Part shown: positions 19,578-57,018 of the stretch, piece by piece
Numbering within the stretch: position 1 is the stretch's first letter
Layout: each line of letters begins with the position of its first letter
Sequence record: NC_019410.1
DNA length: 64,000 nt
Direction: 5' to 3' (one strand)
Program-made: the position numbers and the translations under genes
The notes under the pieces: generated by a model
Told to the model about the DNA's origin: nothing
The model's database searches: none
The model's input: the letters and a program-made list of their open reading frames with translations, nothing else

Positions 19578-19610
19578 GATTCACGACTTCGAATGTCGTG
19601 AATCTTGACA
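19578..19610 (+). promoter_or_regulatory. Portal promoter with GATTCACGAC-N7-GTCGTGAATC dyad abutting TTGACA
   Basis: TCGTGAATCTTGACA 19596-19610. Confidence 0.7.
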
Positions 19611-19718
19611 ACCGGGCGTTAACCATGCCATTTTCCCGCCTACCTGCCCCACCGGTAGGGCCTCCAACGTCAACTTGGGGAGGATGCGTGCGTCCTCCCC
19701 TCCTTCTCCGGGCGCCGC

Positions 19719-21617
19719 ATGGCCGGTCAGACGCCGAACTCCCTGAACATCTCGCGGGTCGCCCGCGCGACCTCGCAGGCCATCTATCTGGTCACCCATC
19801 CCGAGTACCAGCACTGGCGCTCGGAGTGGACCAAGCTGCGTGACGTCCTGGCGGGTCAGCGCGAGATCAAGCGCAAGGGCGAGGCCTATCTGCCGGCCAT
19901 GAAGGGTGCCGACAAGGACGACTACAAAATCTACCTGGAGCGGGCGACCTTCTTCAACATGCTCGCCCAGACGCGCGATGGCATGACCGGCATGGTCTTC
20001 CGCCGCGACCCGTCGATCAAGAACCTGCCGCCCAAGTTCAAGGACGCCGTGCGGCGCTTCGCCAAGGACGGCTCCTCGCACGCCACCTTCGCCAAGGCGG
20101 TCCTGTCGGACCAGTCGGGCATTGGCCGCTACGGCGTCTTGGTCGACGTCACCGATTCCCCGGTCCGCAACGCCCAGCCGTCGAGCTTCGCGGTTGGCTA
20201 CGCGGCCGAGAACATCCTCGACTGGGACGAGGTGGTCGACACCGCCGGCTTCTATGTCCCCAGCCGCGTCCTGTTGCGCGAATTCGTCCGCGACCTGCGC
20301 TGGAAGAGCGATATCGAGCCCCTGACCACCGCCAAGGCCCGCAAGGCGCGCGCCGAGGCCCTGGCCTCCGGCTCCTCGTCCAGCCCCCTGGTGCGCCAGA
20401 CCGCCCGCACCCTGGGCGGCTACAGCTACATCACCGTCTATCGGGAACTGAAGCTCGAAGAGATCGAGTGGCCGTCCGGCGAGGTCAAGCCCGCCTACGT
20501 CCAGTACCTCTACGAAGAAGACCCCGAGTCGACGCCGATCGCCCGCCTCGTCCCCAATGTCCGGGGCGAGCCGCTCGACTTCATCCCCTTCAAGTTCTTC
20601 GGCGCCTCGGGCAACACCGCCGACGTCGAAAAGCCGCCGCTGCTCGACATCTGCGACCTCAACCTGTCGCACTACCGCACCTACGCCGAACTCGAATACG
20701 GCCGTCTGTTCACCGCCCTGCCGGTCTATTACGCGCCGGGCACCGACAGCGAGGGCACCGGCGAATACCACATCGGCCCGAACATGGTCTGGGAAGTCCC
20801 GCAAGGCTCCGAGCCGGGCATCCTGGAATATACTGGTCAGGGCCTGAAGGCCCTCGAAACCGCCCTCAACGACAAGGAGCGGCAGATCGCCGCGATCGGC
20901 GGTCGGATGATGCCCGGCGCCTCCAAGTCGGTGTCGGAGAGCAACAACCAGACGACCCTTCGCGAGGCCAACGAGCAATCGCTGCTCCTCAACATCATCC
21001 AGGCCTGCGAGGCGGGGATGACCGACGTCGTCCGCTGGTGGCTGATGTGGCGCGACGTGCCGCTCGCCGAGACCGAGAACCTGCGCTACGAGATCAACAC
21101 CGACTTCCTGTCGACGCCGATCGGCGCGCGCGAGATGCGGGCGATCCAGCTTATGGCCAACGACGGCCTGCTGCCCGATCCGGTCTTCTACGAGTACATG
21201 CGCAAGGCCGAGGTCATCTCCTCGGACATGACCTTCGAGGAGTTCCAGGAACTGCGCGCCGATCCGGATTCGTTCATCAACAACCCGGACGCCCAGGCCC
21301 GTCAGCGCGGCTTCACCAACCGCAGCCAGGAACTCGAACAGACCCGCATGGCGCGCGAGGCCGACTTCACCCAGCAGAAGATCGACATCCAGGAGCGCGC
21401 CGTGGCGGTCCAGGAAGGGCACGCCGAAGTCGCCCACGCCGTGGGTTCGACCTCGGTTTCCGCCTCGCGCAAGCTGGGCGATCCCGAGCAGGCCCAGCCG
21501 GCGAAGGCCGAGCAAGCCCAGATCGCCAACCAGCGCCGCCAGATCAGCAACGCCGCCGCCACCCCGCCGGCGGCGCCGGGCGCTCCGCCCGCCCCGAACC
21601 CGAGGACCGCCCGATGA
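19719..21617 (+). CDS. Portal protein (DUF4055-like)
   Basis: 632 aa; HPEY...W...YL.RA.FFN and KPPLLDICDLNLSHYR motifs; position upstream of head genes. Confidence 0.85.
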   Translation: MAGQTPNSLNISRVARATSQAIYLVTHPEYQHWRSEWTKLRDVLAGQREIKRKGEAYLPAMKGADKDDYKIYLERATFFNMLAQTRDGMTGMVFRRDPSIKNLPPKFKDAVRRFAKDGSSHATFAKAVLSDQSGIGRYGVLVDVTDSPVRNAQPSSFAVGYAAENILDWDEVVDTAGFYVPSRVLLREFVRDLRWKSDIEPLTTAKARKARAEALASGSSSSPLVRQTARTLGGYSYITVYRELKLEEIEWPSGEVKPAYVQYLYEEDPESTPIARLVPNVRGEPLDFIPFKFFGASGNTADVEKPPLLDICDLNLSHYRTYAELEYGRLFTALPVYYAPGTDSEGTGEYHIGPNMVWEVPQGSEPGILEYTGQGLKALETALNDKERQIAAIGGRMMPGASKSVSESNNQTTLREANEQSLLLNIIQACEAGMTDVVRWWLMWRDVPLAETENLRYEINTDFLSTPIGAREMRAIQLMANDGLLPDPVFYEYMRKAEVISSDMTFEEFQELRADPDSFINNPDAQARQRGFTNRSQELEQTRMAREADFTQQKIDIQERAVAVQEGHAEVAHAVGSTSVSASRKLGDPEQAQPAKAEQAQIANQRRQISNAAATPPAAPGAPPAPNPRTAR

Positions 21618-21940
21618 GCTACCTCCTGTCGCCCTACAAGGCCCCCGCGCCTGAAGCGGTCGCCGCCCACGCCAAGACCCTCCTGGCCCAGCAGGGCTAC
21701 AGCGCCCGCGACGCCCTGATCGGGCGCTGCCAGGAAGCGAGCGTCGATCTGGCCCGCACCGCCGGTCTCAACGCGGCCGAAGCCGCCGAGGTCGGTGAGG
21801 AAATCGCCGGCCTGAACCGGCTGATCGGCGAACTGCAAGACGTCAAAGCCAAGCTGGAGGCCGAGGGCCGCAGCGCCTACGAAGCCGCCGCCCTCAACGC
21901 CGCGACGGCCGTCTATCTGTCGCGCGGCCTGACGCCGTAA
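21614..21940 (+). CDS. Hypothetical protein (108 aa)
   Basis: ATGA overlap with portal stop. Confidence 0.75.
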   Translation: MSYLLSPYKAPAPEAVAAHAKTLLAQQGYSARDALIGRCQEASVDLARTAGLNAAEAAEVGEEIAGLNRLIGELQDVKAKLEAEGRSAYEAAALNAATAVYLSRGLTP

Positions 21941-21959
21941 CCCTAGCTTGTAGAGTAAC

Positions 21960-22139
21960 ATGCCCTCGCGCTACGATTCCCTTGAAGACCTGATGCACGA
22001 CCTCGATCACGAGGGCATCGTGGACGACGGCTTTGGCGAACTGGACGAGGAGGACCTGTCCCTTCTCGTCCCGCCGGGCAAGAAGACCGCGCCCGCGCCG
22101 GCCGCCAAAAAGCGGGGCCGTCCCAAGAAGGCGACCTGA
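21960..22139 (+). CDS. 59-aa acidic protein with C-terminal AT-hook (KKRGRPKK); not in ORF track
   Basis: ATG 21960, TGA 22137-22139. Confidence 0.65.
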   Translation: MPSRYDSLEDLMHDLDHEGIVDDGFGELDEEDLSLLVPPGKKTAPAPAAKKRGRPKKAT

Positions 22140-22378
22140 TGCGCCACGCCTCCGCCCGCTGGAATGTCCTGACCGTCCGCCTGGACGACGTCGCCCATTG
22201 GGTCGACGAGGTCGACGTGGTCATCACCGATCTGGAGACGGGCGAGCACCCGCGCGGCGAGGACGGCGAGTTCCTCCCCATCCTGGCGGCGACCCCCGAA
22301 GCCATCACCCTCTACAACGGCCATGCCATCGCCGGCCGCTACGAGATCACCTCCAGCCTTGAGGCGCCCCGTGTCTGA
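22139..22378 (+). CDS. Hypothetical protein (79 aa)
   Basis: TGATG overlap. Confidence 0.75.
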   Translation: MRHASARWNVLTVRLDDVAHWVDEVDVVITDLETGEHPRGEDGEFLPILAATPEAITLYNGHAIAGRYEITSSLEAPRV

Positions 22379-22544
22379 GACGACCCTGATCGGCGACCCG
22401 AACGCCGAGCGGACCATCGAGGTCCTGGCCATGCACCCCGACGAGGCCGCGAGCTTCGTCCCCACGCCCGAGCAGGCCGCCAAGATCGCGGCGGGCGACA
22501 TGATCATCGGGATCATCCGCTACGGCCCGCCGCCGACGTCGTGA
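22371..22544 (+). CDS. Hypothetical protein (57 aa)
   Basis: GAGG SD before GTG. Confidence 0.65.
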   Translation: MSETTLIGDPNAERTIEVLAMHPDEAASFVPTPEQAAKIAAGDMIIGIIRYGPPPTS

Positions 22545-22553
22545 ATCTTGACA
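22539..22553 (+). promoter_or_regulatory. TCGTGAATCTTGACA promoter motif
   Basis: Exact copy of recurrent motif. Confidence 0.7.
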
Positions 22554-22604
22554 CACCATGTCAGGTGTGATGACGTAGCCCTCGTTAACCACGAGGGCTT
22601 TTCC

Positions 22605-22862
22605 ATGACCACCGCCGTCGACATCCAAGCCGCCGGGCACAACCTGATCGTCTACCTGACGGACATCTATGTCGTCGACGGCGAAGCCCAGGAGCGCGAC
22701 TCCATCGAGTTCGTCCGCAAGGGCGCCAAGCGGACCTTCCATGTTCACCAGACCCGCGACCTCTATGTGACCGAGGTCCGCGACGCCGAGACCGATCTCA
22801 ACGCCCTGATCGACGCCGGCGACGAGGCGGCGGCCCGCCAGTACATCGCCGAGGCGACTTAA
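22605..22862 (+). CDS. Hypothetical protein (85 aa)
   Basis: GAGG SD before ATG 22605. Confidence 0.75.
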   Translation: MTTAVDIQAAGHNLIVYLTDIYVVDGEAQERDSIEFVRKGAKRTFHVHQTRDLYVTEVRDAETDLNALIDAGDEAAARQYIAEAT

Positions 22863-23053
22863 GTTCATAGCGGCGCCGATTGCCCAGCGGGCGCATGCCG
22901 GACACGCGCTGGGAAACCAAATCGGCCGCGATGCGCGCGAAGGCTTTTGATGTAGGGCCGGGACGCGTCAACAGGTGGCGCCGGCCTCTGGGTTCCAGGG
23001 GTTCCTTTCAGCCTGAATCGCGGCAAGTCCGGGCTCCTTTCCCAGAGGGCTCC

Positions 23054-23632
23054 ATGAGCGACGATTTCGACAAGCGTTTCGACGAGATGAAGGCGGCCCT
23101 GGACGGCGTCGCGCCGGGCCAGCTTCGGCTCCCCTTCCCCGGATCGGCCTCGGCTTCGGCCGAGGAATTGATCCGTCGCTTCTCGGCCCTCAATCCCACC
23201 CCGGCCTTCGTGCTCGGGGCGGCCGTCAAGCTCTCGGACGCCCCGCCCGAGCCGCTGCTGCGCGACGGCCACGCCGACGAGGTCTTCGTCGACCTGCCGT
23301 TCGACCACAAGACGGTGGCCGACTGCAAGGCCAAGTTCGTCGACAGCCAAAAGGTTCTCCAGGGCTTTTCGGGCGGGGCGGTCGAGGAAGCGGCGCCCAA
23401 GATCACAATCCAGGTCTATCTCAAGAACGGGCAGGTGCGCGAGTACGACGTCGACACCCAGGCCGCCGCCCGCGAGCACGCCTACGAGATCATCCAGACC
23501 GGCTACCGCGCCGTCGACGAGACCGACCCCACCGTCCTGACCCACTGGCCGCCGCACGAGATCAAGAAGGTCAAGATCAAGGCCCCCGCGCCGTGGACGA
23601 CCCGCTTTTTCGACCGCGTGCGGGGCACCTGA
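23054..23632 (+). CDS. Hypothetical protein (192 aa)
   Basis: GAGG SD before ATG 23054. Confidence 0.8.
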   Translation: MSDDFDKRFDEMKAALDGVAPGQLRLPFPGSASASAEELIRRFSALNPTPAFVLGAAVKLSDAPPEPLLRDGHADEVFVDLPFDHKTVADCKAKFVDSQKVLQGFSGGAVEEAAPKITIQVYLKNGQVREYDVDTQAAAREHAYEIIQTGYRAVDETDPTVLTHWPPHEIKKVKIKAPAPWTTRFFDRVRGT

Positions 23633-23868
23633 TGTCCACCGCGCTCGACGCCGTCCTCGCCCGGATCGAGTCCGGCGAGCCCTTTACCTATGCCGGCCTG
23701 AGCGCGGTCAACGACGCGGCCGGTGGGAACGAGGCGCGCGACCGGCTGGCCGACCGCACCATCCAGAAGTACCGCCGCAAGGGCTGGATCACCTTCACCC
23801 GCGAGGGCCGCTACGTGGTCTGGCGTCCGACGCCGGCCGGCGCCGCCCAGTTCAACCTCCAAGCTTAG
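23632..23868 (+). CDS. Small winged-helix-like protein (78 aa)
   Basis: TGATG overlap; DRTIQKYRRKGWITFTREG resembles wHTH recognition helix and wing. Confidence 0.6.
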   Translation: MSTALDAVLARIESGEPFTYAGLSAVNDAAGGNEARDRLADRTIQKYRRKGWITFTREGRYVVWRPTPAGAAQFNLQA

Positions 23869-23878
23869 GAGCCCGTCC

Positions 23879-24262
23879 ATGTGCGTTGTTTCCGCCGTGA
23901 TGGACTACGGCCGCCGTCAATGGCCCGACCTGCTGGGTCCGGGCGGTCCGACCATCGTGCCGGGCGTGGATCAGCCCTGGTTCGAGATCGTCTCGCCCGG
24001 CCTGCCGCCGGCCCCGGTCCATCCCCGCCCCAAGGTCCCGACCCGCGCCGAGATCGAGGCTTTCCGCCGGCTGGTCCAGGCCGCCAATGAATTTGACCAG
24101 CAGACCGGCCAGCCGCACTGCGAGGACCCCGAGAAGATCAAGCTGCTCGACGCGATCAACAAGCTGGCCGATCGCCTCGACGCCATCGAAAAGCGTCTCG
24201 CCGCCCAGGACAGCGCCGACGCCGAGGACGCGGCGGCGATCACCGCCTCGGTCAAGACGTGA
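23879..24262 (+). CDS. Hypothetical protein (127 aa)
   Basis: AGGAG SD; MCVVSAVMDYG start. Confidence 0.8.
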   Translation: MCVVSAVMDYGRRQWPDLLGPGGPTIVPGVDQPWFEIVSPGLPPAPVHPRPKVPTRAEIEAFRRLVQAANEFDQQTGQPHCEDPEKIKLLDAINKLADRLDAIEKRLAAQDSADAEDAAAITASVKT

Positions 24263-24504
24263 GCGTCTTCGATCTCCCGGCCGACGGCTTTGATCGCCGC
24301 AAGCCGCTCTATCGGGTCTTCAACATCGACGGCGAGAAGCAGTGGTGGACGGTGATCGCCGCCCTCAACGCGCCGGGCCGCCGCTGCACCAAGCAGGAGG
24401 CCATGGGCTGCGAGGACTATGTCGCCGCCCATGCCTGGGCCGAGCACTTCTGGAACTGTTACGCCGCCACTGGCAAGGCGACCATCTACGAGAGCACGCG
24501 ATGA
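24259..24504 (+). CDS. Hypothetical protein (81 aa)
   Basis: GTGA overlap. Confidence 0.75.
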   Translation: MSVFDLPADGFDRRKPLYRVFNIDGEKQWWTVIAALNAPGRRCTKQEAMGCEDYVAAHAWAEHFWNCYAATGKATIYESTR

Positions 24505-24785
24505 AACTCACCGTCAGCGGTCAGGACATGAGCGGGACCGAGACCGTCTATCTGATGCTGGTCCCCCGCGTGGGCGTGCGCCTGGAGAGCGACAAGCCCG
24601 TCACCCTGACCTTCGATCCGCTGCCCGGCGCGGCCGGCGCCGTCAGGGTCGATCCCAAGACCCCCCTGACCCTGGCCGAGAACCCCAAGCCGAGCGAACT
24701 GCGGCTGCTGCCGGCCGGCGCCGAGCAGGTCTTCTACCTCAACGCCAATGGCCGCTGGATGGTGACCTTCCGGGAGGAGCCGTGA
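24501..24785 (+). CDS. Hypothetical protein (94 aa)
   Basis: ATGA overlap. Confidence 0.75.
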   Translation: MKLTVSGQDMSGTETVYLMLVPRVGVRLESDKPVTLTFDPLPGAAGAVRVDPKTPLTLAENPKPSELRLLPAGAEQVFYLNANGRWMVTFREEP

Positions 24786-25021
24786 AACCGGCCCAGCCCA
24801 TGCCCAACGGCATGCCGTTCGGGCGCGACGGCTTTCCGCGCGTCGAGAAGATCGACGCGGTGCGCAACATCGTCACCTTCCATACCGGTGAGACGTCCCC
24901 GATCACAAGTTACCTCGCCGGCGGCGAGGAGGTCGGCAACCCGCTGCGCGCCCAGGTCATCGTCTGCGGCCCCTATCGCGGCAAGTGGCTGGTCATTCCG
25001 GTCGAGGAGGGTGACATTTGA
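24782..25021 (+). CDS. Hypothetical protein (79 aa)
   Basis: GGAGGAG SD, GTGA overlap. Confidence 0.75.
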   Translation: MKPAQPMPNGMPFGRDGFPRVEKIDAVRNIVTFHTGETSPITSYLAGGEEVGNPLRAQVIVCGPYRGKWLVIPVEEGDI

Positions 25022-25257
25022 GCCGCCCCCGCAGCGTCACCGAAGTCCTCTGCGACGACTTCCGCGCCCTCCTGACCACGGGCTTCTACGTCACCGACGA
25101 GCATGGCGAGGTCCATGGGCCGGGCACCCCGCTGGGCGATGCGGCCCTGGCGGCGACCAAGGCGTGGCGCGGCGATCTCTGGAAGGCCTTCCGCCCGATC
25201 GACGACAGCATGTGCCCGGTCCGCGTCCACGAGCGCGAAGCCGCCAAGCGTCCGTGA
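25018..25257 (+). CDS. Hypothetical protein (79 aa)
   Basis: GAGGAGG SD, TTGA overlap. Confidence 0.75.
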   Translation: MSRPRSVTEVLCDDFRALLTTGFYVTDEHGEVHGPGTPLGDAALAATKAWRGDLWKAFRPIDDSMCPVRVHEREAAKRP

Positions 25258-25625
25258 CCCACCGTCCCTCGGCCTATCTCCGGACCCCGCCGATGCGCTA
25301 TCCCGGCCCTTCCGGCTTCGATGAACGGCTGCACCGGGCCGACGGCCGGCCGACGCGGCTTTTGGTCGCGCCGCATCTGGCCTGGGCGCTCCACCAGCTA
25401 CGGCGCTATGGTTCGCCGATCGACTGGCTCCTGCCGGTGACGCGCGAGGGCCTCGCCTCGCCGGGCGATCGTCCGTTCGGCCAGAAGACGGTGCGTCTCA
25501 AGCTCGGCCGCCGGAGGCTGACCCGCCTGGGTGACTATCTCGAATACATGCAGTTCGCGAGCGATGCGGACCTTGCAACCTACAGGCAATGGCTGAAGGA
25601 GACGCCGATTTTTCCGGTGTCGTGA
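25254..25625 (+). CDS. Hypothetical protein (123 aa)
   Basis: GTGA overlap. Confidence 0.7.
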   Translation: MTHRPSAYLRTPPMRYPGPSGFDERLHRADGRPTRLLVAPHLAWALHQLRRYGSPIDWLLPVTREGLASPGDRPFGQKTVRLKLGRRRLTRLGDYLEYMQFASDADLATYRQWLKETPIFPVS

Positions 25626-25634
25626 TTCTTGACA
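25620..25634 (+). promoter_or_regulatory. TCGTGATTCTTGACA promoter motif
   Basis: One-base variant retaining GANTC. Confidence 0.7.
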
Positions 25635-25670
25635 CCCTATGTCGTCTGTGGTGACATCCGCTCGTTAACC

Positions 25671-26033
25671 ATGACGGGCTCCCCGATGATCCGCCTGACC
25701 AAGTCCCAGCACTACACCAACACGGCCGAGAACGACCGTAGCTGGTACCTGGACCCGACCCTGAAGTTCGAGGTCCATGCCCTTCCGATCGTGGCCGAGG
25801 GGCAAAAGTGCGGCTATCCGTCGGCGGGCGCCCTGGTCTGTATGAATGGCGAGGCCCACTATGTCGACGAGGACGTCGACACCATCCTGACCCTGATCAA
25901 GATCGCCCGCGCCCCGCACCTCTACCCCCTGCAAGACTCGAACGGTCGCCTGATCAATCGTGACGCCTTGATCTATCTGGGATTCTCGAACGGCGCGTTC
26001 GACTACGGCCTGATGAGCGGGGTGGACGCGTGA
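25671..26033 (+). CDS. Hypothetical protein (120 aa)
   Basis: ATG just downstream of promoter. Confidence 0.7.
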   Translation: MTGSPMIRLTKSQHYTNTAENDRSWYLDPTLKFEVHALPIVAEGQKCGYPSAGALVCMNGEAHYVDEDVDTILTLIKIARAPHLYPLQDSNGRLINRDALIYLGFSNGAFDYGLMSGVDA

Positions 26034-26710
26034 TCGGCAACCTCATCGCGCTTCGTCAGAACGAAGCCCTGGCCCTGGCGCGCGGCGTGCTGTCGAGCCC
26101 CGATCCGGTCGGTCACATCACCCGCAAGCTGGCCCAGGCCCTGGTCGACGAAGCCGCGCTCTACGAGGACCGGCGCCTCGCCTTCATGCACCCGTCGATC
26201 CTCTGCGCCAACGGCGAGTATTACGATTTCACCGATCCGGACGCCTTTTCCTGGGACATCGAGGTGATCGCCGCCGGCCTGCGCGCCCCGCGCTTCACCG
26301 CCCAGACCCGGAGTCTCGGGACCTATTCGATCCTCCAGCACTCGGTCCTGGCCAGCTACATCGTCCCCAAGGGCTTCGAACTGGAGGCCCTGCTGCACGA
26401 CGCCCAGGAGAGCGTGCTCGGCGACAAGGCCACGCCGTTCAAAATCCTCCTGCCCGACTACAAGCACTACGAGGACGCGGCCGAGCGCGCCGTGCGGCGC
26501 AAGTACGGCCTGCCCGAGACGATGTCGCGCGAGGTCAAGCACGCCGACGTCGTCATGCTCGCCACCGAGAAGCGCGACATCATGCCCAACCCCGAGGACG
26601 AGTGGGAAATGCTCAGGGATATCAAGCCCTTGGACTTCCCGATCGAGGTCTGGGACGTCGAGCACGCCCGCAAGGTCTTCCTCGAACGCTTCGCCGATCT
26701 GACGGCCTGA
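26030..26710 (+). CDS. HD-domain phosphohydrolase (YfbR/5'-deoxynucleotidase-like)
   Basis: YSILQHSVL...ALLHDAQESVLGD...KHADVVMLATEKRD. Confidence 0.8.
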   Translation: MIGNLIALRQNEALALARGVLSSPDPVGHITRKLAQALVDEAALYEDRRLAFMHPSILCANGEYYDFTDPDAFSWDIEVIAAGLRAPRFTAQTRSLGTYSILQHSVLASYIVPKGFELEALLHDAQESVLGDKATPFKILLPDYKHYEDAAERAVRRKYGLPETMSREVKHADVVMLATEKRDIMPNPEDEWEMLRDIKPLDFPIEVWDVEHARKVFLERFADLTA

Positions 26711-30574: not shown

Positions 30575-30589
30575 GTCAAGCGCGTAGTG

Positions 30590-30627
30590 TCGTGAATCTT
30601 GACATTCGGCGTATTTTTTGCTAGGTT
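30590..30627 (+). promoter_or_regulatory. Scaffold promoter TCGTGAATC-TTGACA-N17-TAGGTT
   Basis: Motif with canonical spacing. Confidence 0.75.
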
Positions 30628-33281: not shown

Positions 33282-33314
33282 AACCCCCGGACCTCGGTCC
33301 GGGGGTTTTCTTTT
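33282..33314 (+). terminator. Intrinsic terminator
   Basis: CCCCGGACC-TC-GGTCCGGGG followed by TTTTCTTTT. Confidence 0.8.
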
Positions 33315-33335
33315 GGGTGCTGCGGCCCAGAAATG

Positions 33336-33350
33336 TCGTGAATCTTGACA
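33336..33350 (+). promoter_or_regulatory. TCGTGAATCTTGACA promoter motif
   Basis: Exact copy. Confidence 0.65.
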
Positions 33351-33438
33351 CAAGGGCCGTTTCATGCCAGAAGTCAAGTCTCTTTTGAGCGCGGCGTTGA
33401 AGGGCCGTGCCGGTCTCCCCCGAAACGGAAAATCCCCC

Positions 33439-46736: not shown

Positions 46737-47513
46737 ATGGCGATCCAGAACCCCCATTCCACCACGCCCGGCACCATGCCGCACCTGACGCCCGGCGAGA
46801 TCGGCGTCAACAAGGCCGACGACATCCTCTGGTTCCGCTCGCAGGGGCGCCGCGTGCCGATCATCCTGAGCGATCTTGACCGCGCCCCGCCGGCGGACGG
46901 CTATGTCGGCGCTCCCCTGACTCTGGTCGACGGCGCGCCGGCCTGGAATGTCAAGCTCTTGCCGTCCTCGATCGTCTCCGGCGCGGTCAAGGTCGATCTC
47001 CCGCCCGCCGCCGGCCTGCACGCCGTGCCGAGCGTCCTGCTCCAGGGCCTGGGGGCCGATCGCGTCCTGGCGACCAATGATCTGGACCTCACCCCCTTCT
47101 ATGTCCGCTCCGACTCCATCACCCTGACCCATCTGGCCTTCAGCGTGCGCTCGGCCGGCGCGCCGGCCATGCGCGTGGGGATCGTCGACAGCTTCGGCGT
47201 CGTCCAGGCCGACATCCTGGTCGCCGCGCCGGTCGTGGGCGCCAATGTCGTGGCCCTCTCGCCGGTCCTGACCCTCCAGCGCGGCGTCTACCGCACCATC
47301 CTGGCGACGACCGGGGCGGTGACGGTGGGGATCGCCACCGGCGCGCGCATGGAACAGGGCTGGGACATCATCGCCGACGCGCCGTCGTTTATCCGGGGCT
47401 ACAGCGGTAGCAAGAACACTGGCGGCGGCATCGGGAGCCTGCCAGCGCTCACCCCGCGCCGCGACCCCGCGCCGGGCCAGGATCACGCCGTCCTCCTGCG
47501 CTGGACGGCGTGA
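46737..47513 (+). CDS. Fibre-associated protein, paralogue of giant-fibre C-terminus
   Basis: PHLTPGEIGVNKADDIL...TPFYV...LQRGVY. Confidence 0.75.
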   Translation: MAIQNPHSTTPGTMPHLTPGEIGVNKADDILWFRSQGRRVPIILSDLDRAPPADGYVGAPLTLVDGAPAWNVKLLPSSIVSGAVKVDLPPAAGLHAVPSVLLQGLGADRVLATNDLDLTPFYVRSDSITLTHLAFSVRSAGAPAMRVGIVDSFGVVQADILVAAPVVGANVVALSPVLTLQRGVYRTILATTGAVTVGIATGARMEQGWDIIADAPSFIRGYSGSKNTGGGIGSLPALTPRRDPAPGQDHAVLLRWTA

Positions 47514-47545
47514 ATCTTGACACTCGGTCGAAATGCGGTTAACCT
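47508..47545 (+). promoter_or_regulatory. Promoter GCGTGAATC-TTGACA-N17-TAACCT
   Basis: Variant of recurrent motif with canonical spacing. Confidence 0.65.
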
Positions 47546-50471: not shown

Positions 50472-50558
50472 GGTAGGTGGTTCCGGCCTGGGGCCGGACC
50501 CGGTTGCTAACCGGCCGGAGCCGCAAGGCTTGGGGTTCGATTCCTCCTCCTACCGCCA
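50472..50558 (+). tRNA. tRNA-Ser (GCT)
   Basis: Class II cloverleaf. Confidence 0.85.
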
Positions 50559-50598
50559 ACATCTCCCAGGCCTATAGCCTGGGAGGGTTTGGACATAA

Positions 50599-51087
50599 TC
50601 AGGCGTGGTTCGGAAACTCGGCGATCTCAATCCCAGGCGAGGCGCTGACGACCAACCAGTAAGCTCCGGTCCAGCGCAAGACAACCGCAGGCGGATAGGC
50701 CGGGGCCAAGGGGGTGAGCACGGATGCCGGATCGGCTACGATAGAATCGGGCAACGGAACGATCAAGGCTGGACCGGTTTTCGCCGTCGCAGGATCACCA
50801 TAACCGGAAGCGAAGACGGGGGTCTGAACGCCAGCGTCAGCCAATATGCCGAGGATAATAGGCATAGCTAAGGGCGCACTCTGCGGAGCATGTGTCCCAC
50901 GAGAGAATGTGATGAAAAGTTCGTCTCCTACTTCCTTCGCGGCAGTAAGGAATCCATATCTTGCGGCATAGTCGGCTGCTCCGAATTCAGGAGAGACTTG
51001 GCTTACGAGATGGACGCGCTGCTCTCCGTTCGGGTTGACGATTTGAATCGAAGCCTCAATACCTCGGTTCATCGTGATTGCGGTCAT
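50599..51087 (-). CDS. Lower-GC hypothetical protein inserted antisense within tRNA array (162 aa)
   Basis: GGAG SD before ATG on minus strand; A/T-ending codons; hairpin at 50563-50585. Confidence 0.65.
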   Translation of the reverse strand: MTAITMNRGIEASIQIVNPNGEQRVHLVSQVSPEFGAADYAARYGFLTAAKEVGDELFITFSRGTHAPQSAPLAMPIILGILADAGVQTPVFASGYGDPATAKTGPALIVPLPDSIVADPASVLTPLAPAYPPAVVLRWTGAYWLVVSASPGIEIAEFPNHA

Positions 51088-51189
51088 AAGTATCTCCAGC
51101 GGCTGGATGCCGCAGTGCGATGCCTAAAGTCGAGTTTTCGACGTGTCCAGCCCCTTTGAAGTTGACACCCGCGACGCGGCCTGTCATAC

Positions 51190-51410
51190 GTCACGACAGA
51201 GCGAACACCCCCCGGCCGGGTTTGTTGTCATACCGGGTCGTCACGCCCCGTCGGGGCTCTAGTAGCTCTTCGTGTGGAGTTTTCCGCCTCCCTCCCAGAC
51301 AAGGAGGCGGACCCAACCAACATCGCGATCTCCCGTGATCGTCGGCGACGGGCGCCGTCAGAGACCTTTGCCTGCGCGGCTCCGCTGCGGCCCTGGTCTC
51401 GTCCCGACCA
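51190..51410 (+). ncRNA. Candidate structured ncRNA ending in ACCA
   Basis: TTGACA promoter ~51163; no credible ORF; nested helices GTCGG/CCGAC, GACGG/CCGTC, GAGACC/GGTCTC; T-run after. Confidence 0.4.
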
Positions 51411-51429
51411 AATTTTTTCGTCGTGGTGC

Positions 51430-51458
51430 TTGACACTGCGAAACTGTTCTGCTAGGGT
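51430..51458 (+). promoter_or_regulatory. Promoter TTGACA-N17-TAGGGT for Tyr-Arg tRNA unit
   Basis: Canonical spacing. Confidence 0.75.
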
Positions 51459-51465
51459 TCACGTC

Positions 51466-51564
51466 ATGAGCAAGACCTATCGTCAATTTGTGCGCCAGAT
51501 TCAGGTCGTCCGGAATATCCGGGCGGGCCGCTCGCGCATGGCTGACGAAGGGTTCAGGGACTAG
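51466..51564 (+). CDS. Leaderless 32-aa leader peptide MSKTYRQFVRQIQVVRNIRAGRSRMADEGFRD
   Basis: Residues 5-19 exclusively Y/R/Q/F/V/I/N; ATG at predicted +1. Confidence 0.7.
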   Translation: MSKTYRQFVRQIQVVRNIRAGRSRMADEGFRD

Positions 51565-51594
51565 GTCCCACACCACGTTCAACCAGCTTTCGAG

Positions 51595-51633
51595 AGGCCC
51601 GCCTGGAAACCCCAGGCGGGCCTTTTTTCTTTT
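51595..51633 (+). terminator. Attenuator terminator before tRNA-Tyr
   Basis: AGGCCCGCCTGG/CCAGGCGGGCCT 12-bp stem plus TTTTTTCTTTT. Confidence 0.85.
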
Positions 51634-51666
51634 CCACTTTCGATCACGGAGATCGCCAACAGACAC

Positions 51667-51751
51667 GGATGCTTAAAGCTGGAGGGCTCCAGCCGGGGAC
51701 TGTAAATCCCCTCTCTTCGGAGGAGTGGTTCGATCCCACAAGCATCCACCA
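51667..51751 (+). tRNA. tRNA-Tyr (GTA)
   Basis: Class II cloverleaf. Confidence 0.85.
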
Positions 51752-51756
51752 ACCAC

Positions 51757-51832
51757 GGACTCGTAGCTCAGCAGGTAGAGCGCCGGCTTGAAACCCCGGA
51801 GGTCGGAGGTTCGACTCCTCCCGTTTCCACCA
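51757..51832 (+). tRNA. tRNA-Phe (GAA)
   Basis: Cloverleaf, encoded CCA. Confidence 0.85.
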
Positions 51833-51837
51833 ACAAC

Positions 51838-51913
51838 GCCCGATGAGCCAGATGGGAAGGCGCCGCCGTGACATGGCGGGATTGAGAAGGTTCGATTCCT
51901 TCATCAGGCACCA
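51838..51913 (+). tRNA. tRNA-Val (GAC)
   Basis: CCGCC-GTGACAT-GGCGG; G32. Confidence 0.85.
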
Positions 51914-51915
51914 AT

Positions 51916-51991
51916 GCAAGTGTAGCTCAGTTGGTAGAGCAGCGGACCGATAATCCGCCCGTCCCTGGTTCGAGTCCAGGCATTTGCACCA
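51916..51991 (+). tRNA. tRNA-Ile (GAT)
   Basis: Loop CCGATAA (C33). Confidence 0.85.
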
Positions 51992-51998
51992 GTTCTGA

Positions 51999-52073
51999 TG
52001 TGGCATAGCTCAGGGGTAGAGCGCGCGCTTGATAAGCGTGAGGTCGGGGGTTCGAAGCCCTCTGCCACTACCA
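51999..52073 (+). tRNA. tRNA-Ile (GAT)
   Basis: Cloverleaf, encoded CCA. Confidence 0.9.
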
Positions 52074-52106
52074 GTTTCCAGGCCGGCGGAGATGCGCCGA
52101 ACCTGA

Positions 52107-52182
52107 TGGCGTTTAGCATAGTGGGAGTGCAGGGGTGTCACATACCTCGATCGAACTGGTTCGATTCCAGTAACGCCAACCA
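52107..52182 (+). tRNA. tRNA-Val (CAC)
   Basis: Loop GTCACAT. Confidence 0.8.
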
Positions 52183-52187
52183 AATGT

Positions 52188-52261
52188 TGAGGGTTCGTCT
52201 AACGGTAGGACGGCTGGGTCTGGTCCAGCTAATCTAGGTTCGAGTCCTAGCCCCTCATCCA
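52188..52261 (+). tRNA. tRNA-Gln (CTG)
   Basis: GCTGG-GTCTGGT-CCAGC. Confidence 0.85.
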
Positions 52262-52268
52262 AGTTTGT

Positions 52269-52342
52269 TCTCGGGTGGTCTAATGGTAAGACATCTGGTT
52301 TTGGTCCAGAGGATTGGGGTTCGATTCCTTGGCCGAGAACCA
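52269..52342 (+). tRNA. tRNA-Gln (TTG)
   Basis: TCTGG-TTTTGGT-CCAGA. Confidence 0.85.
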
Positions 52343-52357
52343 ACTACTTGAGTTTAT

Positions 52358-52432
52358 TCCAGTCAATGCACAAGGTGTGCAGCGGCACTGTTAATGCCTG
52401 TGAGCCCGGTTCGATTCCGGGGTCTGGAGCCA
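52358..52432 (+). tRNA. tRNA-Asn (GTT)
   Basis: GGCA-CTGTTAA-TGCC, G73 CCA. Confidence 0.85.
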
Positions 52433-52458
52433 ACACGCCGGCCGAGGCCGGCACATGC

Positions 52459-52541
52459 GCCCTGGTAACCGAGGGGGATTACGAATCCCTTAGTCGTAGC
52501 AGGAGTTGAAAAGGGTGGTTCGAATCCACTCCAGGGTGCCA
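52459..52541 (+). tRNA. tRNA-Arg (ACG)-like, D-armless with 23-nt variable region
   Basis: 7-bp acceptor, 8-nt connector, GGGGA-TTACGAA-TCCCT, canonical T-arm, CCA. Confidence 0.65.
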
Positions 52542-52548
52542 AATTCAC

Positions 52549-52631
52549 AGCGCGCAGGCCGAGCAGGATCATCGTCAGGCGTCGCCCTCCGAAGGCGAAG
52601 AGGCCCGGTTCGAGTCCGGGGCGCGCTGCCA
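52549..52631 (+). tRNA. tRNA-Arg (CCG) with enlarged D region
   Basis: TCGCC-CTCCGAA-GGCGA; 26-nt D region. Confidence 0.8.
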
Positions 52632-52634
52632 TCC

Positions 52635-52712
52635 GCGCGGGTAGCTCAATGGACCCAGAGCAGCCGTCTTCTACACGGTGGGTTGGGGGTTCGAATCCCT
52701 CCCCGTGCGCCA
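52635..52712 (+). tRNA. tRNA-Arg (TCT)
   Basis: Cloverleaf, encoded CCA. Confidence 0.9.
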
Positions 52713-52749
52713 AACTTGACAGGCGATGTCGAATCGCCGAGGATCAAAC

Positions 52750-53047
52750 CGTAGGCCTCTTCCCGTGGGCCTGACATATACGTCCGCCAGCACTGCCATT
52801 CCGCGTCAGCGGGCGCGGCGCGAGGAAGGGTTAACCCCTCGTTGTCACGCAGTCGGGTGGTGTGGACGTCCCAACGTGATCTTCGAACGCGGCATGCCGT
52901 GGAGGGGTGATCGGATGGCGAACCAAGGGACACCTTCTTATCCTGGCCTGGGTCGCATGAGGCTCCGCTGGGAGAAACGGCCTGACCCGACCGGAGGTGC
53001 GTTCAGGATGCCGGCTCCCCATGCCAGAGCCTCGTGGACTAGGGTCT
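52750..53047 (+). ncRNA. Candidate ~300-nt structured ncRNA
   Basis: TTGACA-N17-GAGGAT promoter at 52716; long-range complementarities; no credible ORF. Confidence 0.45.
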
Positions 53048-53070
53048 GAAATTTTTCTGGCGCTGATGTG

Positions 53071-53203
53071 TTGACACTCCTCGGAGGCTCGGCTAAAACC
53101 AGCAGCGTCAGAGCGGCGTTGGACCACGAGGTCCGCCGCGAGCTTCTGCGTTGTCGTCAGGAACGGCCCGCCAGCAATCCCGCTGGCGGGTCGTTTCGTT
53201 TTG
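53071..53203 (+). ncRNA. Promoter plus ~95-nt small RNA ending in CAATCCCG-loop hairpin
   Basis: TTGACA-N17-TAAAAC; hairpin GGACC/GGTCC; 11-bp stem 53164-53193 with T-rich tail. Confidence 0.55.
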
Positions 53204-53239
53204 GGCGCAATGCGACGTTCAGTCCAACCATGGGTAGTG

Positions 53240-53277
53240 TCATGAATCTTGACTTTCGGCGCTTATTCCGGTAGCTT
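53240..53277 (+). promoter_or_regulatory. Promoter TCATGAATC-TTGACT-N17-TAGCTT
   Basis: Variant of recurrent motif. Confidence 0.7.
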
Positions 53278-53322
53278 TCCCGACATCAGCAAACGCTCAC
53301 AAGTCGGGGACCGAGAGCCGTC

Positions 53323-53739
53323 ATGTCGCAAGACCACAACGGCTCGTCCTCGGGCCAAGAACGCATCTACCAGAAACTGGATGAGCTTGGCTCCATGCAC
53401 GCGCGCACCCGTGAAGATATTGCCCGCATCCAGGAGATGATGCGAGCGGTCGGTTCGTCGCAGGAGCGGATCGAAAAGCGCCAGGACCATTTCGAGCGCG
53501 AAATCTGGCGTGAGATGGAAGATCGCGCCGCGCGCACGAGCGCCCAACTCGACGAGATCAAGAGCCACACCAACCTGCGCATCGAGGAGATCGAGGCCAA
53601 GGTCGACACGATCCGCGAGGAACGGATCGCCGAGAAGGCCCAGTGGCGCGGCCCCGAGAAGGCCATCGCCGCCCTGGTCGCCGTCGCCGGGGCCATCGCC
53701 GCCTTCGCCACGATCCTCACTTTCCTGAAGGGACACTAG
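53323..53739 (+). CDS. Coiled-coil protein with C-terminal TM (138 aa)
   Basis: Heptad-like composition, hydrophobic tail. Confidence 0.75.
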   Translation: MSQDHNGSSSGQERIYQKLDELGSMHARTREDIARIQEMMRAVGSSQERIEKRQDHFEREIWREMEDRAARTSAQLDEIKSHTNLRIEEIEAKVDTIREERIAEKAQWRGPEKAIAALVAVAGAIAAFATILTFLKGH

Positions 53740-53846
53740 GACTTATAGTCAAGCTTGGGTGCCTGCGGCCAGAAGTCGCGCTTCTTGACACCCGATCTGG
53801 GCCGGCATAACCATAGGGCCATCGTTCCTGGGTGGAGTTTTCCCTA

Positions 53847-54053
53847 ATGGCTGTCGCGCTTACTGTCGTCTCGGTTGAGACCGAATCTACCATCCAAGGT
53901 GTTGACCCCGACGCGGCGCATGTCCGCCTGATCGAGGTCCTGCATACCGCCGCAGAAGCGGGTCTTGGGGAAATGACGTTGGAAGTCAAAGCGGAGATCG
54001 CGGCGCTGCTCCAGCAGGCGTCCGTGGAACTCTCCCACTGCCGGCCGGTGTAG
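53847..54053 (+). CDS. Hypothetical protein (68 aa)
   Basis: GGAG SD before ATG 53847. Confidence 0.55.
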   Translation: MAVALTVVSVETESTIQGVDPDAAHVRLIEVLHTAAEAGLGEMTLEVKAEIAALLQQASVELSHCRPV

Positions 54054-54087
54054 GGGTCCCGTAAATCGCCATCCCAGAGGGAGCGAC

Positions 54088-54954
54088 GTGTCCGAGTCTG
54101 CTGAGTTCAACCCGCTCGACCAAAATCAGTTCCCTCCTCGCCTCACCAAGGCTGCTGCGCGACAGGCGCGGCGCCAGGAGCGCAGCCAGAAAAAGGACCC
54201 CACGGCCAACAAGCCGAACTACAAGGCGCTCGAAGCCAAGACCGAACGCCAACGGCGCTATATCCAGGCCCTCAAGGCGGGTGAAAGCGTCATCGCCATT
54301 GGCGGGGCCGGCACGGGGAAGACCTACATCCCGTCCCGGCTCTTCGCCAAGAAGCTGATCGAGGCGAAGATCGAACGCCTGATCATCGCCCGCGTCACCG
54401 CCTCGCGTCCCAAGCACGCCCTGGGCTTCCTGCCCGGCAAGCTGGAAGCCAAGCTCGCCCCGTGGCTCGTCCCGGTCATCGAGGGCGTCAAGGCCGAGAT
54501 GAACGCCCAGACCTACACTCAGTTGCAGGAAGCCGGCAAGATCGAGTTCGCCTCGTTCGAGCACATGCGCGGCCGGACCTTCGCCGAGTGCTGCGTCCTC
54601 CTCGACGAGGCGCAGAACGCCGACTACAAGGACCTGAAGATGGTCCTGACCCGCTGGGGCGAGAACGCCCAATACGCGGTCACCGGCGACATCGACCAGA
54701 TCGACGTCGACGACTCGGGCCTGGAGACGGTCGTCGACATCGTCGAGACCCACGATATCCCGATCCACGTGATCGAGTTCACCGACGAGGACGTGGTCCG
54801 CTCGCCCATGGCCAAGGCCTGGGTCAAGGCGTTCTCCGCCCATGAGGGCAAGGACGAGCGGGCGCGGCGCTTCCACCGCCCCACTGTCAGGAATCTTGAC
54901 GTCCTGCCGGCTTTTATCGATAATGGCCGAGTCACGAAACCCGTGGCGTCGTGA
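54088..54954 (+). CDS. phoH: PhoH-family ATPase
   Basis: GGAGTGKT Walker A, LGFLPG, MRGRTF, LLDEAQN, GDIDQID, VVRS. Confidence 0.92.
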   Translation: MSESAEFNPLDQNQFPPRLTKAAARQARRQERSQKKDPTANKPNYKALEAKTERQRRYIQALKAGESVIAIGGAGTGKTYIPSRLFAKKLIEAKIERLIIARVTASRPKHALGFLPGKLEAKLAPWLVPVIEGVKAEMNAQTYTQLQEAGKIEFASFEHMRGRTFAECCVLLDEAQNADYKDLKMVLTRWGENAQYAVTGDIDQIDVDDSGLETVVDIVETHDIPIHVIEFTDEDVVRSPMAKAWVKAFSAHEGKDERARRFHRPTVRNLDVLPAFIDNGRVTKPVAS

Positions 54955-54955
54955 C
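54887..54955 (+). promoter_or_regulatory. Promoter (TCAGGAATC-TTGACG-N17-GATAAT) and dyad (54931-54955) inside phoH 3' end
   Basis: Both motif classes adjacent, upstream of head-tail genes. Confidence 0.65.
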
Positions 54956-54971
54956 AAAGACGTAGCGCACC

Positions 54972-55493
54972 ATGGCCTTCACCTTCGTTGTTGAGACTGG
55001 CGCCGGCGACCCGGCCGCGAACTCGTACTGCGACGTGCAGTTCGCGGACGACTACATCTACGCCAATGTCTACGCCAACACCGCCTGGGACGCGCTGGAT
55101 CAGGACGGCAAGGAACGTTTTCTGGTCCGGGCGTCCAAGTACCTCGACCGCACGATCGCCTGGGCCGGGGAGAAGGTCGACGAGGATTCCGGCCTGCGCT
55201 GGCCGCGCGCCGGGGTCTATGACATCGACGGCTTCCTGATCCCCAGCGACGCGATCCCCCAGCAACTCATGGAGGCCACCGCCGAGATGGCGGCGGCCCT
55301 CATGAACAACGACTGGACCTCGCCGCAGACCACGCGCGGCATGAAGGAAATCCAGGTCGACGTCATCGAACTGAAGTTCGACAGCGAAATCCAGCGCGGC
55401 TCCATGCCCGACATCGTCATGTCGATCCTCGAAGGTCTGGGGGTCGTCAAGACCGGCACCCGCCCGGCCTTCAAGAAGATCATTCGCCACTAA
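54972..55493 (+). CDS. Head-tail adaptor protein
   Basis: ANSYCDVQFADDY...ASKYLD...LRWPR motif; gene order. Confidence 0.75.
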   Translation: MAFTFVVETGAGDPAANSYCDVQFADDYIYANVYANTAWDALDQDGKERFLVRASKYLDRTIAWAGEKVDEDSGLRWPRAGVYDIDGFLIPSDAIPQQLMEATAEMAAALMNNDWTSPQTTRGMKEIQVDVIELKFDSEIQRGSMPDIVMSILEGLGVVKTGTRPAFKKIIRH

Positions 55494-55885
55494 TGGCCCT
55501 CGAAGCCTTCATCCGTTCCCAGGTCGTCATCGCCTTCAACCAGCTTGACGACATCGCCAAGCGCTGGACCTACGTCCAACGCTCGGGCGATCCGGTGCGT
55601 GATGTCGAGAGCGGCGTGACCACCTATCCTTCCACCGAGATCGTCATTCCCAAAGCGGTCAAGGTGCGGTTCAAGAAGGACGAGAAGGACGCCCACGGCC
55701 AGACCCTGGTGGGCGAGAAGGTCCTGTTCCCCCGCGTCTTCCTGCCGGGCGACTTCGAGACCGCGACCTCCGACTACCTCGTCGACCAGAACGGCATCAT
55801 CTGGGAGATCATGAGTGACCTGGGCGACCCGGCCTCGGCGCTGGCGATGTTCCAGGTCCGCAGCACGCGGAAGAAGACCCCGTGA
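55493..55885 (+). CDS. Head closure protein
   Basis: Gene order, beta-rich 130 aa. Confidence 0.6.
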   Translation: MALEAFIRSQVVIAFNQLDDIAKRWTYVQRSGDPVRDVESGVTTYPSTEIVIPKAVKVRFKKDEKDAHGQTLVGEKVLFPRVFLPGDFETATSDYLVDQNGIIWEIMSDLGDPASALAMFQVRSTRKKTP

Positions 55886-56355
55886 AGTCGGGCGGAGCCA
55901 AGCTCAGCTTCTACACCGACGGGAACCTGGAGGCGGCGTTCAAGCGCTTCTTCGCCACCGCCGAGAAGCGCTATGACGAGCGGGCCGATCGCCTGCTGAT
56001 CAAGCTGAACGAACTGATCCTGGCCCGCACCCCGGTGTGGGAGGGCGACACCATCCATAACTGGCGCTGGTCGACGCGTGCCCCGGACATGCGCCACGAG
56101 GCCCCGCTAGACAACGGCGATCCGGGCCGCACGAGCGAGATGGACCTGGGCCAGGAGCCGCGCCGCCGCGTCAACGAGACGCGCCCCCGCCAGTCGCTGG
56201 CCGGCGCCCTGCGCGCCAAGGAGCCGATCGACATCTATCTGACCAACACCGCCGAGAGCGCGGTCGATCTCGAATACGGCCTGCTCCCGACCAGGGCGCA
56301 GAGCCGAAACAAGATGGGGATGGTCCGAATCTCGATTAAAGAGGTGTTCGGATGA
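55882..56355 (+). CDS. Tail completion/neck protein (HK97 gp10-like)
   Basis: RTPVWEG...NW...IYLTN...AVDLEYG motif. Confidence 0.7.
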   Translation: MKSGGAKLSFYTDGNLEAAFKRFFATAEKRYDERADRLLIKLNELILARTPVWEGDTIHNWRWSTRAPDMRHEAPLDNGDPGRTSEMDLGQEPRRRVNETRPRQSLAGALRAKEPIDIYLTNTAESAVDLEYGLLPTRAQSRNKMGMVRISIKEVFG

Positions 56356-56426
56356 TCCCCGCCTTCATCATCCTGCCGCGCGTCTATCTCGCCGCGTGGC
56401 TGTCGTTCTGGCTGGGAGAGGACTGA
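56352..56426 (+). CDS. 24-aa hydrophobic peptide MIPAFIILPRVYLAAWLSFWLGED
   Basis: GAGGT SD; ATGA and TGATG overlaps with both neighbours. Confidence 0.6.
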   Translation: MIPAFIILPRVYLAAWLSFWLGED

Positions 56427-56881
56427 TGCTCGAACACGACATGCTCCGGCAAGTCCTGGAGCAGCAGGCCGTCGCCGCCGCCCCGACGATCGGGCTGAAG
56501 CTGAACTTCGACAACTCCGAATTCGTCCAGCCCAAGGACGGCGCGCACTGGGCCGAGTTCTGGGTCCAGACGGGCAACACCGTGCCCTGCGAGGTCGCTG
56601 GCCCGCGCGGCTACGAAAAGACCTCGGGCCTGATCCAGTTCACGCTCAAGGCCCCCGAGGAAGAAGGCAACGGCGCGATCCTCAAGAAGGCCGGCGCGCT
56701 CAAGAAGGTCTTCAACCGCCGCCAATGGGTCGTGGCGCCGGACGGCTATGTCACCCTCGACCCGATCTCGGTCCAGTCGCACGGCAAGCCGATCGACGGC
56801 TTCTATAATGTCGTGGTCTGGGCGACCCTCTGGTTCTACCACCGCGATCCCGACGCCGACGATCGCTGGATTCGCGGTTGA
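56426..56881 (+). CDS. Tail terminator protein
   Basis: FDNSEFVQP...GLIQF...P..EG motif; precedes tail tube. Confidence 0.7.
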   Translation: MLEHDMLRQVLEQQAVAAAPTIGLKLNFDNSEFVQPKDGAHWAEFWVQTGNTVPCEVAGPRGYEKTSGLIQFTLKAPEEEGNGAILKKAGALKKVFNRRQWVVAPDGYVTLDPISVQSHGKPIDGFYNVVVWATLWFYHRDPDADDRWIRG

Positions 56882-56890
56882 CCGCGTCTT

Positions 56891-57018
56891 TCACGCCGGC
56901 TAAGGTCGTGAATCTTGACATTTCCCAAAGTCTAGGGTAGGGTCACCACACTTGCGATGCAGGGCCGGGTCGGCACGCTCGCTGACCCCCTTTTGTCACA
57001 AAACCGTGGATTGGTGAC
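56891..57018 (+). promoter_or_regulatory. Tail promoter TCGTGAATC-TTGACA-N17-TAGGGT plus dyad at 56995-57018
   Basis: Both motif classes present. Confidence 0.75.

Follow-up and report, generated by a model that had tools for sequence, protein, structure and literature searches.

A recurrent upstream element adjoining TTGACA marks a candidate non-early promoter class in the Caulobacter phage CcrKarma

Activator-dependent middle or late promoters are known from several phages, among them those with the MotA box of T4, the Ogr (P2) and Delta (P4) dyad at about -55, and the Mor and C promoters of Mu; those of MotA, Mor and C lack a perfect -35. Here we describe a recurrent element, GTCGTGAATC followed directly by the -35-like hexamer TTGACA, in the genome of the phiCbK-like phage CcrKarma (hereafter Karma; genus Shapirovirus; NC_019410.1, 221,828 bp). 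The stretch analysed, called the window, comprises bases 1-64000 of this record, so that window and record coordinates are identical; gene positions and names follow the RefSeq annotation. Whole-genome scans covered the window together with bases 64001-213000, the rest of the record being the right terminal repeat. An earlier note on the window had listed nine copies with the CcrM site GANTC set against the -35, and had proposed a middle/late promoter class gated by methylation and/or by a TCGTGA-binding phage activator.

Several features of host transcription frame the comparison. The Caulobacter sigma factor RpoD (sigma-73) has the consensus TTGaCgS / GCtANAWC (PMC8144410). Host GcrA follows the context rule YGAKTCK, in which AGATTCA, the complement of TGAATCT, takes rank 32 of 32; the pair AGATTCA/TGAATCT served as a 'low' mutant, whose binding fell to the unmethylated level (PMC4647560). 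Host GcrA boxes are centred at -20 ± 1, at -30 ± 2 or between +5 and +30 (PMC9976885). A study of CtrA control in phiCbK-like phages found clusters of full CtrA sites in the terminal repeats, reported that its predicted GcrA sites gave no positional signal, and did not describe the present motif (PMC9437464). In the searchable literature we found no description of phiCbK promoters, nor of a genome-wide and subfamily-wide promoter class such as the one presented here.

All nine copies were recovered where the earlier note had placed them, at 19596, 22539, 25620, 30590, 33336, 47508, 53240, 54887 and 56906, and all on the + strand. The pattern GANTCTTGAC has 9 matches in the window against 0.35 expected (maximum of 2 in 100 shuffles), and the 15-mer with up to 3 mismatches has 15 against 0.74 expected. 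GAATC is found at eight of the nine sites and GATTC only at 25620, while TTGAC is invariant here (9/9) as in the whole genome (19/19). Each site has a gene or operon directly downstream (in order: portal, gp048, gp057, scaffold, gp071, gp080 with tRNAs, gp085, head-tail adaptor and tail tube), and several follow a terminator. The reported overlap with coding sequence and stop codons is real: 54887 falls in the 3' end of phoH (gp087), and gp047, gp056 and gp079 each have the TGA of TCGTGAATC as their stop codon. Equally, five sites do carry a -10-like hexamer, TAnnnT or GATAAT, exactly 17 bp past TTGACA; the -10 is poor at several members of the class (CCATTT, TGACGT, CAGAAG). Only 54896 passes a scan with an E. 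coli-type consensus, from which the Caulobacter RpoD consensus differs.

The whole-genome scan, which the earlier note had proposed as a check, located 20 copies of GANTCTTGAC in 213 kb, 19 of them co-oriented with and just 5' of the downstream gene or operon; the twentieth, at 201310, has GACTC, lies antisense within a gene and looks like a chance occurrence. The 19 sites are distributed over the structural, lysis and replication modules and the region ahead of the terminase genes. Past the window they precede gp097, gp101, the endolysin gene, nrdA, the exonuclease gene, the methyltransferase/A1 operon, the helicase gene, gp142, gp148 and gp327, the last upstream of the terminase genes; none was found in 1-19 kb, nor from 116.4 kb to the first members of the terminase region near 204-206 kb. 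No other word family of the genome is as over-represented as the one around GTGAATCTTGAC. With TTGACA set at -35 to -30, the presumed promoter numbering used throughout, the full consensus reads (a)(a)tGTCGTGAATCTTGACA, with G-45, C-43, GA.TC and TTGAC invariant. The relaxed pattern GTCRYG-N4-TTGAC adds four plausible members without GANTC (51420, 53775, 80632 and 204382), which all keep C-36, and brings the family to 23 sites, missing from the early arms. Members 51420 and 53775 are conserved in the phages Rogue, BL10 and BL57. The statement that all copies keep GANTC thus holds for the nine sites, where it is true by construction because they had been chosen by GANTC, and fails for these two other family members in the window.

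The exact 17-mer does not occur in Caulobacter genomes, the host chromosome included, and a search of 185,579 genomes with the exact motif gave 55 matches, about the chance level, none of them in Caulobacter; among IMG/VR sequences, only those of Karma, Rogue and BL10 have it in multiple copies. Five of the 55 matches lie in a single Opitutaceae metagenome-assembled genome, where the same 16-mer with variable linker bases belongs to a palindromic repeat family among ordinary bacterial genes; these copies bear no similarity to the phage and were judged a coincidence of that repeat family.

Between 113.8 and 203 kb, about 24 other sites make up a second promoter class with the form cTGGC-N6-7-wGTG-TTGACA-N17-(c)TAGAAG; one example was noted in the window at 53068-53076. 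These sites are followed by a conserved leader, CGACGACAACGArGGAG, with a ribosome-binding site, and are confined to, and co-oriented with, arms of small, presumably early genes. In appearance they are early promoters of the host type, and their -10 is good. Since a separate early class exists, the motif under study represents a distinct, non-early class. In the time course of phiCbK, replication genes are early, and structural and lysis genes middle or late (PMC10688885). Of the proposed middle/late class, the part that stands is a distinct promoter class for non-early genes; it is not purely late, because its members also precede nrdA, the exonuclease gene, the methyltransferase/A1 operon and the helicase gene.

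The nine window sites were aligned with their orthologues in Rogue, BL10, BL57 and Bajun, and identity was measured against Karma. Mean identity is 0.81-1.0 from -45 to -30, drops to about 0.5-0.67 at -46 and from -29 to -22, and rises again to 0.75-1.0 (mostly at least 0.8) from -21 to -9, the second conserved block spanning -21 to -7. Two conserved blocks around a free spacer are what a promoter footprint would show, with the -35 and its upstream element, a spacer and the -10. From the motif, its placement and its conservation we infer that the sites act as promoters.

The upstream element itself is half of a larger structure at four promoters, those of the portal, the tail tube (one mismatch), the methyltransferase/A1 operon and gp327, where it forms the palindrome TCACGAC-N7-GTCGTGA. 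The spacer is always N7, and at three of the four the distal arm is without GANTC. Extra copies of GTCGTGA(A/T)TC without a -35 cluster in the divergent region between gp042 and the portal gene. The block GTCGTGA is common to Karma, Rogue, BL10, BL57 and Bajun. Orthologous promoters of Colossus and CcrPW (PW) instead have (C/G)TGCCAG followed by GAATC, AATTC, TTTTC or GATTA and then TTGACA, and those of CcrSC (SC) have TGACG(C/T)A(T/A)TTC and TTGACA. Shared across the subfamily are T-46, G-45, C-43, an A/T-rich stretch at -39 to -37, C-36 and TTGACA, whereas positions -44 and -42 to -40 are lineage-specific; in Colossus- and Bertely-type phages the architecture is the same but GANTC is not constant. 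Colossus, PW and SC have the same host strain as Karma. As the variable block differs among phages of one host strain, a host protein is an unlikely reader of it, and a co-evolving phage protein is the simpler explanation.

On balance we favour, with a probability of roughly 0.55, the reading that the sites are phage-specific non-early sigma-73 promoters with an upstream half-site for a phage-encoded protein, GANTC being mainly a by-product. The housekeeping sigma factor of the host would use the consensus -35 TTGACA and the variable, often weak -10 located 17 bp downstream. Within the 10-bp upstream element that adjoins the -35, the 5' part GTCGTGA (-45 to -39) would be the half-site of a phage-encoded DNA-binding protein, probably a dimer, which would switch the non-early promoters on once early gene expression has taken place. 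The 3' part, (W)TC, would be a piece of an extended -35 common to the phage subfamily, and GANTC would be mainly a by-product because it is formed at the junction of the two parts (GTGA+ATC). The TCGTGA-binding phage factor of the earlier note fits both the palindromes that the half-site forms and the upstream block with its lineage-specific sequence. What this reading infers from the observed motif, placement, footprint, palindromes and lineage differences is which factor acts and in which direction it regulates.

A further layer may be added by CtrA. Over the genome as a whole, TTAACC shows no enrichment (40 copies, where about 38 are expected); 13 of the 40 copies lie within -40 to +80 of the 23 promoters, where about 0.5 would be expected. 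For TTAACCAY, nine of 13 copies are in promoter windows; of the remaining four, those at 19314 and 98140 stand beside extra GTCGTGAATC copies. This CtrA half-site-like sequence (TTAACCAT) lies in the spacer or just downstream of many of the promoters, in the window at 19619-19626, 22585-22592, 25665-25672 and 47539-47544, and additionally at 19314-19321. At the portal promoter the arrangement TTGACA-N6-7-GTTAACCAT is kept in every lineage examined, also in those with a different upstream block. The TTAACCAT half-sites overlap the core promoter; they fit the 'lytic deferment' ascribed to CtrA (PMC9437464) and would extend it to the core promoters of morphogenesis genes. Host CtrA bound there would hold the promoters down in the infected swarmer cell.

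As to the putative phage factor, gp151 (HTH_3, 138 amino acids) lies together with gp150 behind an early-class promoter at 120478. Karma, Rogue and Bajun share one recognition helix in this protein, SKSQITRYLNG, the proteins being 42% identical overall; in Colossus the helix is changed at three positions. This pattern, drawn from four sequences, makes gp151 a candidate, and only a lead. Other candidates were rejected. The published CAAC-type matrices of the phage XRE factor TgrL and its host paralogues fail to match the element, as does the matrix of host RtrC, whose sites are ACCC..GGGT-like. The CI/LexA-like gp110 occurs subfamily-wide, but its presumed recognition helix differs between Karma and Bajun despite their common motif. 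In gp150, which is likewise conserved across the subfamily, the winged-helix signal is weak and the putative recognition helix varies among phages with the same motif; the annotators of Bajun labelled the orthologue 'motA', and neither this protein nor Karma gp150 has a MotA match in Pfam or the PDB. Finally, inspection of the sites for TGAATC as the -35 of an extracytoplasmic function sigma factor showed no consistent CGT-type -10 at the right distance.

Several points weigh against the favoured reading. The linker AATC occurs in 18 of the 23 members, which is far more uniform than a passive junction needs. GANTC is strongly purged elsewhere in the Karma genome (observed/expected 0.26, with 297 sites where a first-order Markov model predicts 1126; the strongest depletion among 16 XYNY'X' palindromes), which hints that the site itself may matter. 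The motif stands before replication genes, reported as early, as well as structural genes, reported as middle or late (PMC10688885), and with targets of such differing timing one factor alone cannot set the timing. A protein at -45 to -39 could be a repressor instead of an activator. The covariation pattern of gp151 rests on four sequences, and the cognate protein is still a candidate only. Lastly, four RNA sequencing runs from 2023 that contain phiCbK-like sequence consist of contigs of flat depth and carry no start-site information.

One alternative is that the N6-methyladenine state of GANTC at -40 to -36 is read by a GcrA-type cofactor, either gp234 of the phage or host GcrA, which activates the promoters. 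We consider this unlikely, and GANTC/GcrA is the less likely of the two options of the earlier note. The phage GcrA homologue had rightly been placed outside the window: gp234 (164228-164776, - strand; gp222 in phiCbK; Pfam GcrA, E = 5e-25) is full-length and stands at the head of an early-type arm, and in the phage GcrA proteins the C-terminal domain retains both its zinc ligands and its sigma contacts. Furthermore, 19 of the 23 family members have GANTC, in which the sole change is at N, so the most depleted of the 16 palindromes is nevertheless kept at these promoters; position -38 is roughly in helical phase with -20 and -30; the weak -10 would suit a cofactor that promotes open-complex formation (PMC4647560); and the methyltransferase-like gp129, with an NPPY motif, lies behind one such promoter.

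What is known of the context and position rules of host GcrA does not support such gating. The phage box has the context TGAATCT/AGATTCA, the lowest of the 32 for host GcrA (24 of the 297 genomic GANTC sites share it), and its presumed centre at -38 lies upstream of the -35, where host GcrA boxes are not found. Across the nine sites in five phages, the N of GANTC is conserved to 0.97, equal to the four specified bases, and it is fixed as A, which CcrM does not require. Two of the four members without GANTC are conserved in all GcrA-encoding relatives examined. Conversely, GcrA homologues occur only in Shapirovirus, Poindextervirus (BL10 included) and BL57; none was detected at E up to 1e-3 in Bajun, Colossus, PW, the Bertelyviruses or large Brevundimonas phages, yet Bajun keeps GTCGTGAATC-TTGACA, and 7 of its 9 sites in the examined region have GANTC, a share similar to the 9 of 11 in the Karma window. 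GcrA would also leave the conserved GTCG (-45 to -42) and the N7 palindromes unexplained. In the GcrA-encoding Synechococcus phage Ssp-JY42 (67% GC), GANTC is depleted (47 against 238 expected) and no recurrent GANTC motif was found.

A point in favour of GcrA concerns the protein itself. N34S and H41D are present in all four phage GcrA lineages (63-66% identical to that of Karma); in host GcrA, residues 34 and 41 line the methyl pockets and contact the central base pair, and the phage box departs from YGAKTCK exactly at that central base. This would allow a private circuit, in which the early phage GcrA variant on sigma-73 reads the (methylated) GAATC at -38 in a context that the host ignores and turns the non-early promoters on independently of the host cell cycle, with the CtrA half-sites holding them off in swarmer cells. 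We regard this version as doubtful, a shade more so than gating by a GcrA-type cofactor in general.

Another alternative would dispense with a dedicated factor: the element would be an extended -35 or UP-like element read by host RNA polymerase, or a cassette homogenised within the genome by recombination. Consistent with this are the consensus -35, the sequence TC-TTGACA and the positions G-45 and C-43 found in all lineages, and the occurrence before genes of different temporal classes. It is nonetheless improbable, as the block at -44 to -40 varies among phages that share one host polymerase, the sharp conservation edges hold across phages with diverged flanks, the N7 inverted repeats point to a dimeric binder, and the early class has the same -35 without the element. 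Least probable is that the element is an operator for a phage- or host-encoded repressor that delays otherwise strong promoters: the consensus -35 with a reasonable TAG-type -10 could work unaided at about half of the sites, the element touches the -35 and the co-occurring TTAACCAT also suggests negative control, but the -10 is poor in the members mentioned above and the data favour neither sign of regulation.

Under the favoured reading of sigma-73 promoters with a half-site for a phage protein, the individual sites of the window, all on the + strand, are as follows. The promoter of the portal gene gp043 (19595-19633) combines GTCGTGAATC and TTGACA with a -10 region at 17 bp, and TTAACCAT lies within its spacer; its distal half-site TCACGAC lies at 19581-19587, and the promoter is also present in Rogue, BL10, BL57 and Bajun. 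In the divergent region between gp042 and the portal gene, the two extra copies without TTGACA are at 19332-19341 and 19373-19382; the second of these, GTCGTGATTC, sits in the loop of a GC-rich hairpin, GCCCCGCCTG ... CAGGCGGGGC. The gp048 promoter (22538-22598), whose TGA is the gp047 stop, has a hairpin at 22577-22598 downstream. This hairpin, with TTAACCAC in its loop and followed by a U-run (-16.6 kcal/mol, z = -4.5), is located between the -10 and the gp048 start codon, and the predicted start site falls inside it; transcripts reading through from upstream are predicted to end there, and an RNA started at the promoter would be without the 5' arm.

The gp057 promoter (25619-25672), the sole GATTC variant, includes the gp056 stop and has TTAACCAT downstream. 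It is followed by the promoters of the scaffolding gene gp068 (30589-30627; -10 TAGGTT at 17 bp) and of gp071 (33335-33373), the latter 30 bp past a terminator at 33284-33305. The promoter of gp080 and the tRNA cluster (47507-47545) carries the variant GGCGTGAATC, in which TGA is the gp079 stop, and the -10 TAACCT. The first member without GANTC (51420-51458; GTCGTG-GTGC-TTGACA, -10 TAGGGT) lies 5' of a tRNA cluster starting at 51757, and the second (53775-53813; GTCGCG-CTTC-TTGACA, with TAACCAT at the -10) precedes gp086. Between them, the gp085 promoter (53239-53277; GTCATGAATC-TTGACT, -10 TAGCTT) is situated past a terminator at 53160-53197. The head-tail adaptor promoter (54886-54924), within the phoH 3' end, reads GTCAGGAATC-TTGACG-17-GATAAT, and that of the tail tube gene gp093 (56891-56943) has its distal half-site TCACGCC at 56891-56897, 7 bp upstream of the element, and the -10 TAGGGT. 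The RefSeq starts of the portal (gp043) and adaptor (gp088) genes are on CTG, at 19788 and 55122, and ATG open reading frames begin at 19719 and 54972; the annotation of the Rogue adaptor agrees with the longer (ATG) form of gp088. Beyond the window, gp129 (- strand) is annotated as a DNA methyltransferase and, besides its NPPY motif, has a PHROG methyltransferase match and none in Pfam, NCBIfam or the PDB; its operon, shared with a T5 A1-like gene, lies behind a full-palindrome copy of the motif.

For the Caulobacter cell-cycle model, phiCbK is the standard phage. The two-class map (early GTG-TTGACA and non-early GTCGTGAATC-TTGACA, often with a CtrA half-site) would offer testable handles on gene timing by a phage of 220 kb in a host that drives its own transcription with CtrA, GcrA and CcrM, and the long-standing question of the role of the phage GcrA homologue narrows to whether or not it acts at 19 boxes.

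The 23 sites share a box whose distance from the core promoter is fixed and which is specific to one gene set, and in this the class resembles the activator-dependent phage promoters, which likewise combine a box at fixed position in many promoters with the main sigma factor of the host; partial dyad symmetry, centred at about -52 at four sites, is a further likeness. In contrast to those systems, the Karma class keeps a perfect -35, and its box adjoins the -35 instead of replacing it; homologues of MotA, Ogr or Mor were not detected. Compared with sigma-73 consensus promoters of Caulobacter (PMC8144410), the class shares TTGACA at -35 and, at several sites, a TAG-type -10, but adds the 10-bp upstream element and a variable -10, and the early class of the phage fits the host consensus better. 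With the GcrA/CcrM sigma-70 promoters of Caulobacter (PMC4647560, PMC5887438, PMC9976885) it has in common a GANTC within a sigma-70-type promoter with a weak -10, and the sigma-binding domain is intact in the GcrA homologue that the phage encodes; the class differs in the worst-ranked context, the position -38 outside the known ones, the extra GTCG and the dyad repeats, and in having family members and sister lineages without GANTC or without GcrA. Closest by origin are the CtrA-controlled promoters of the same phiCbK-like phages (PMC9437464): CtrA half-site-like TTAACCAT lies in or beside promoters in all lineages here, whereas the sites described previously are full sites in the terminal repeats and those described here are half-site-like sequences at core promoters.

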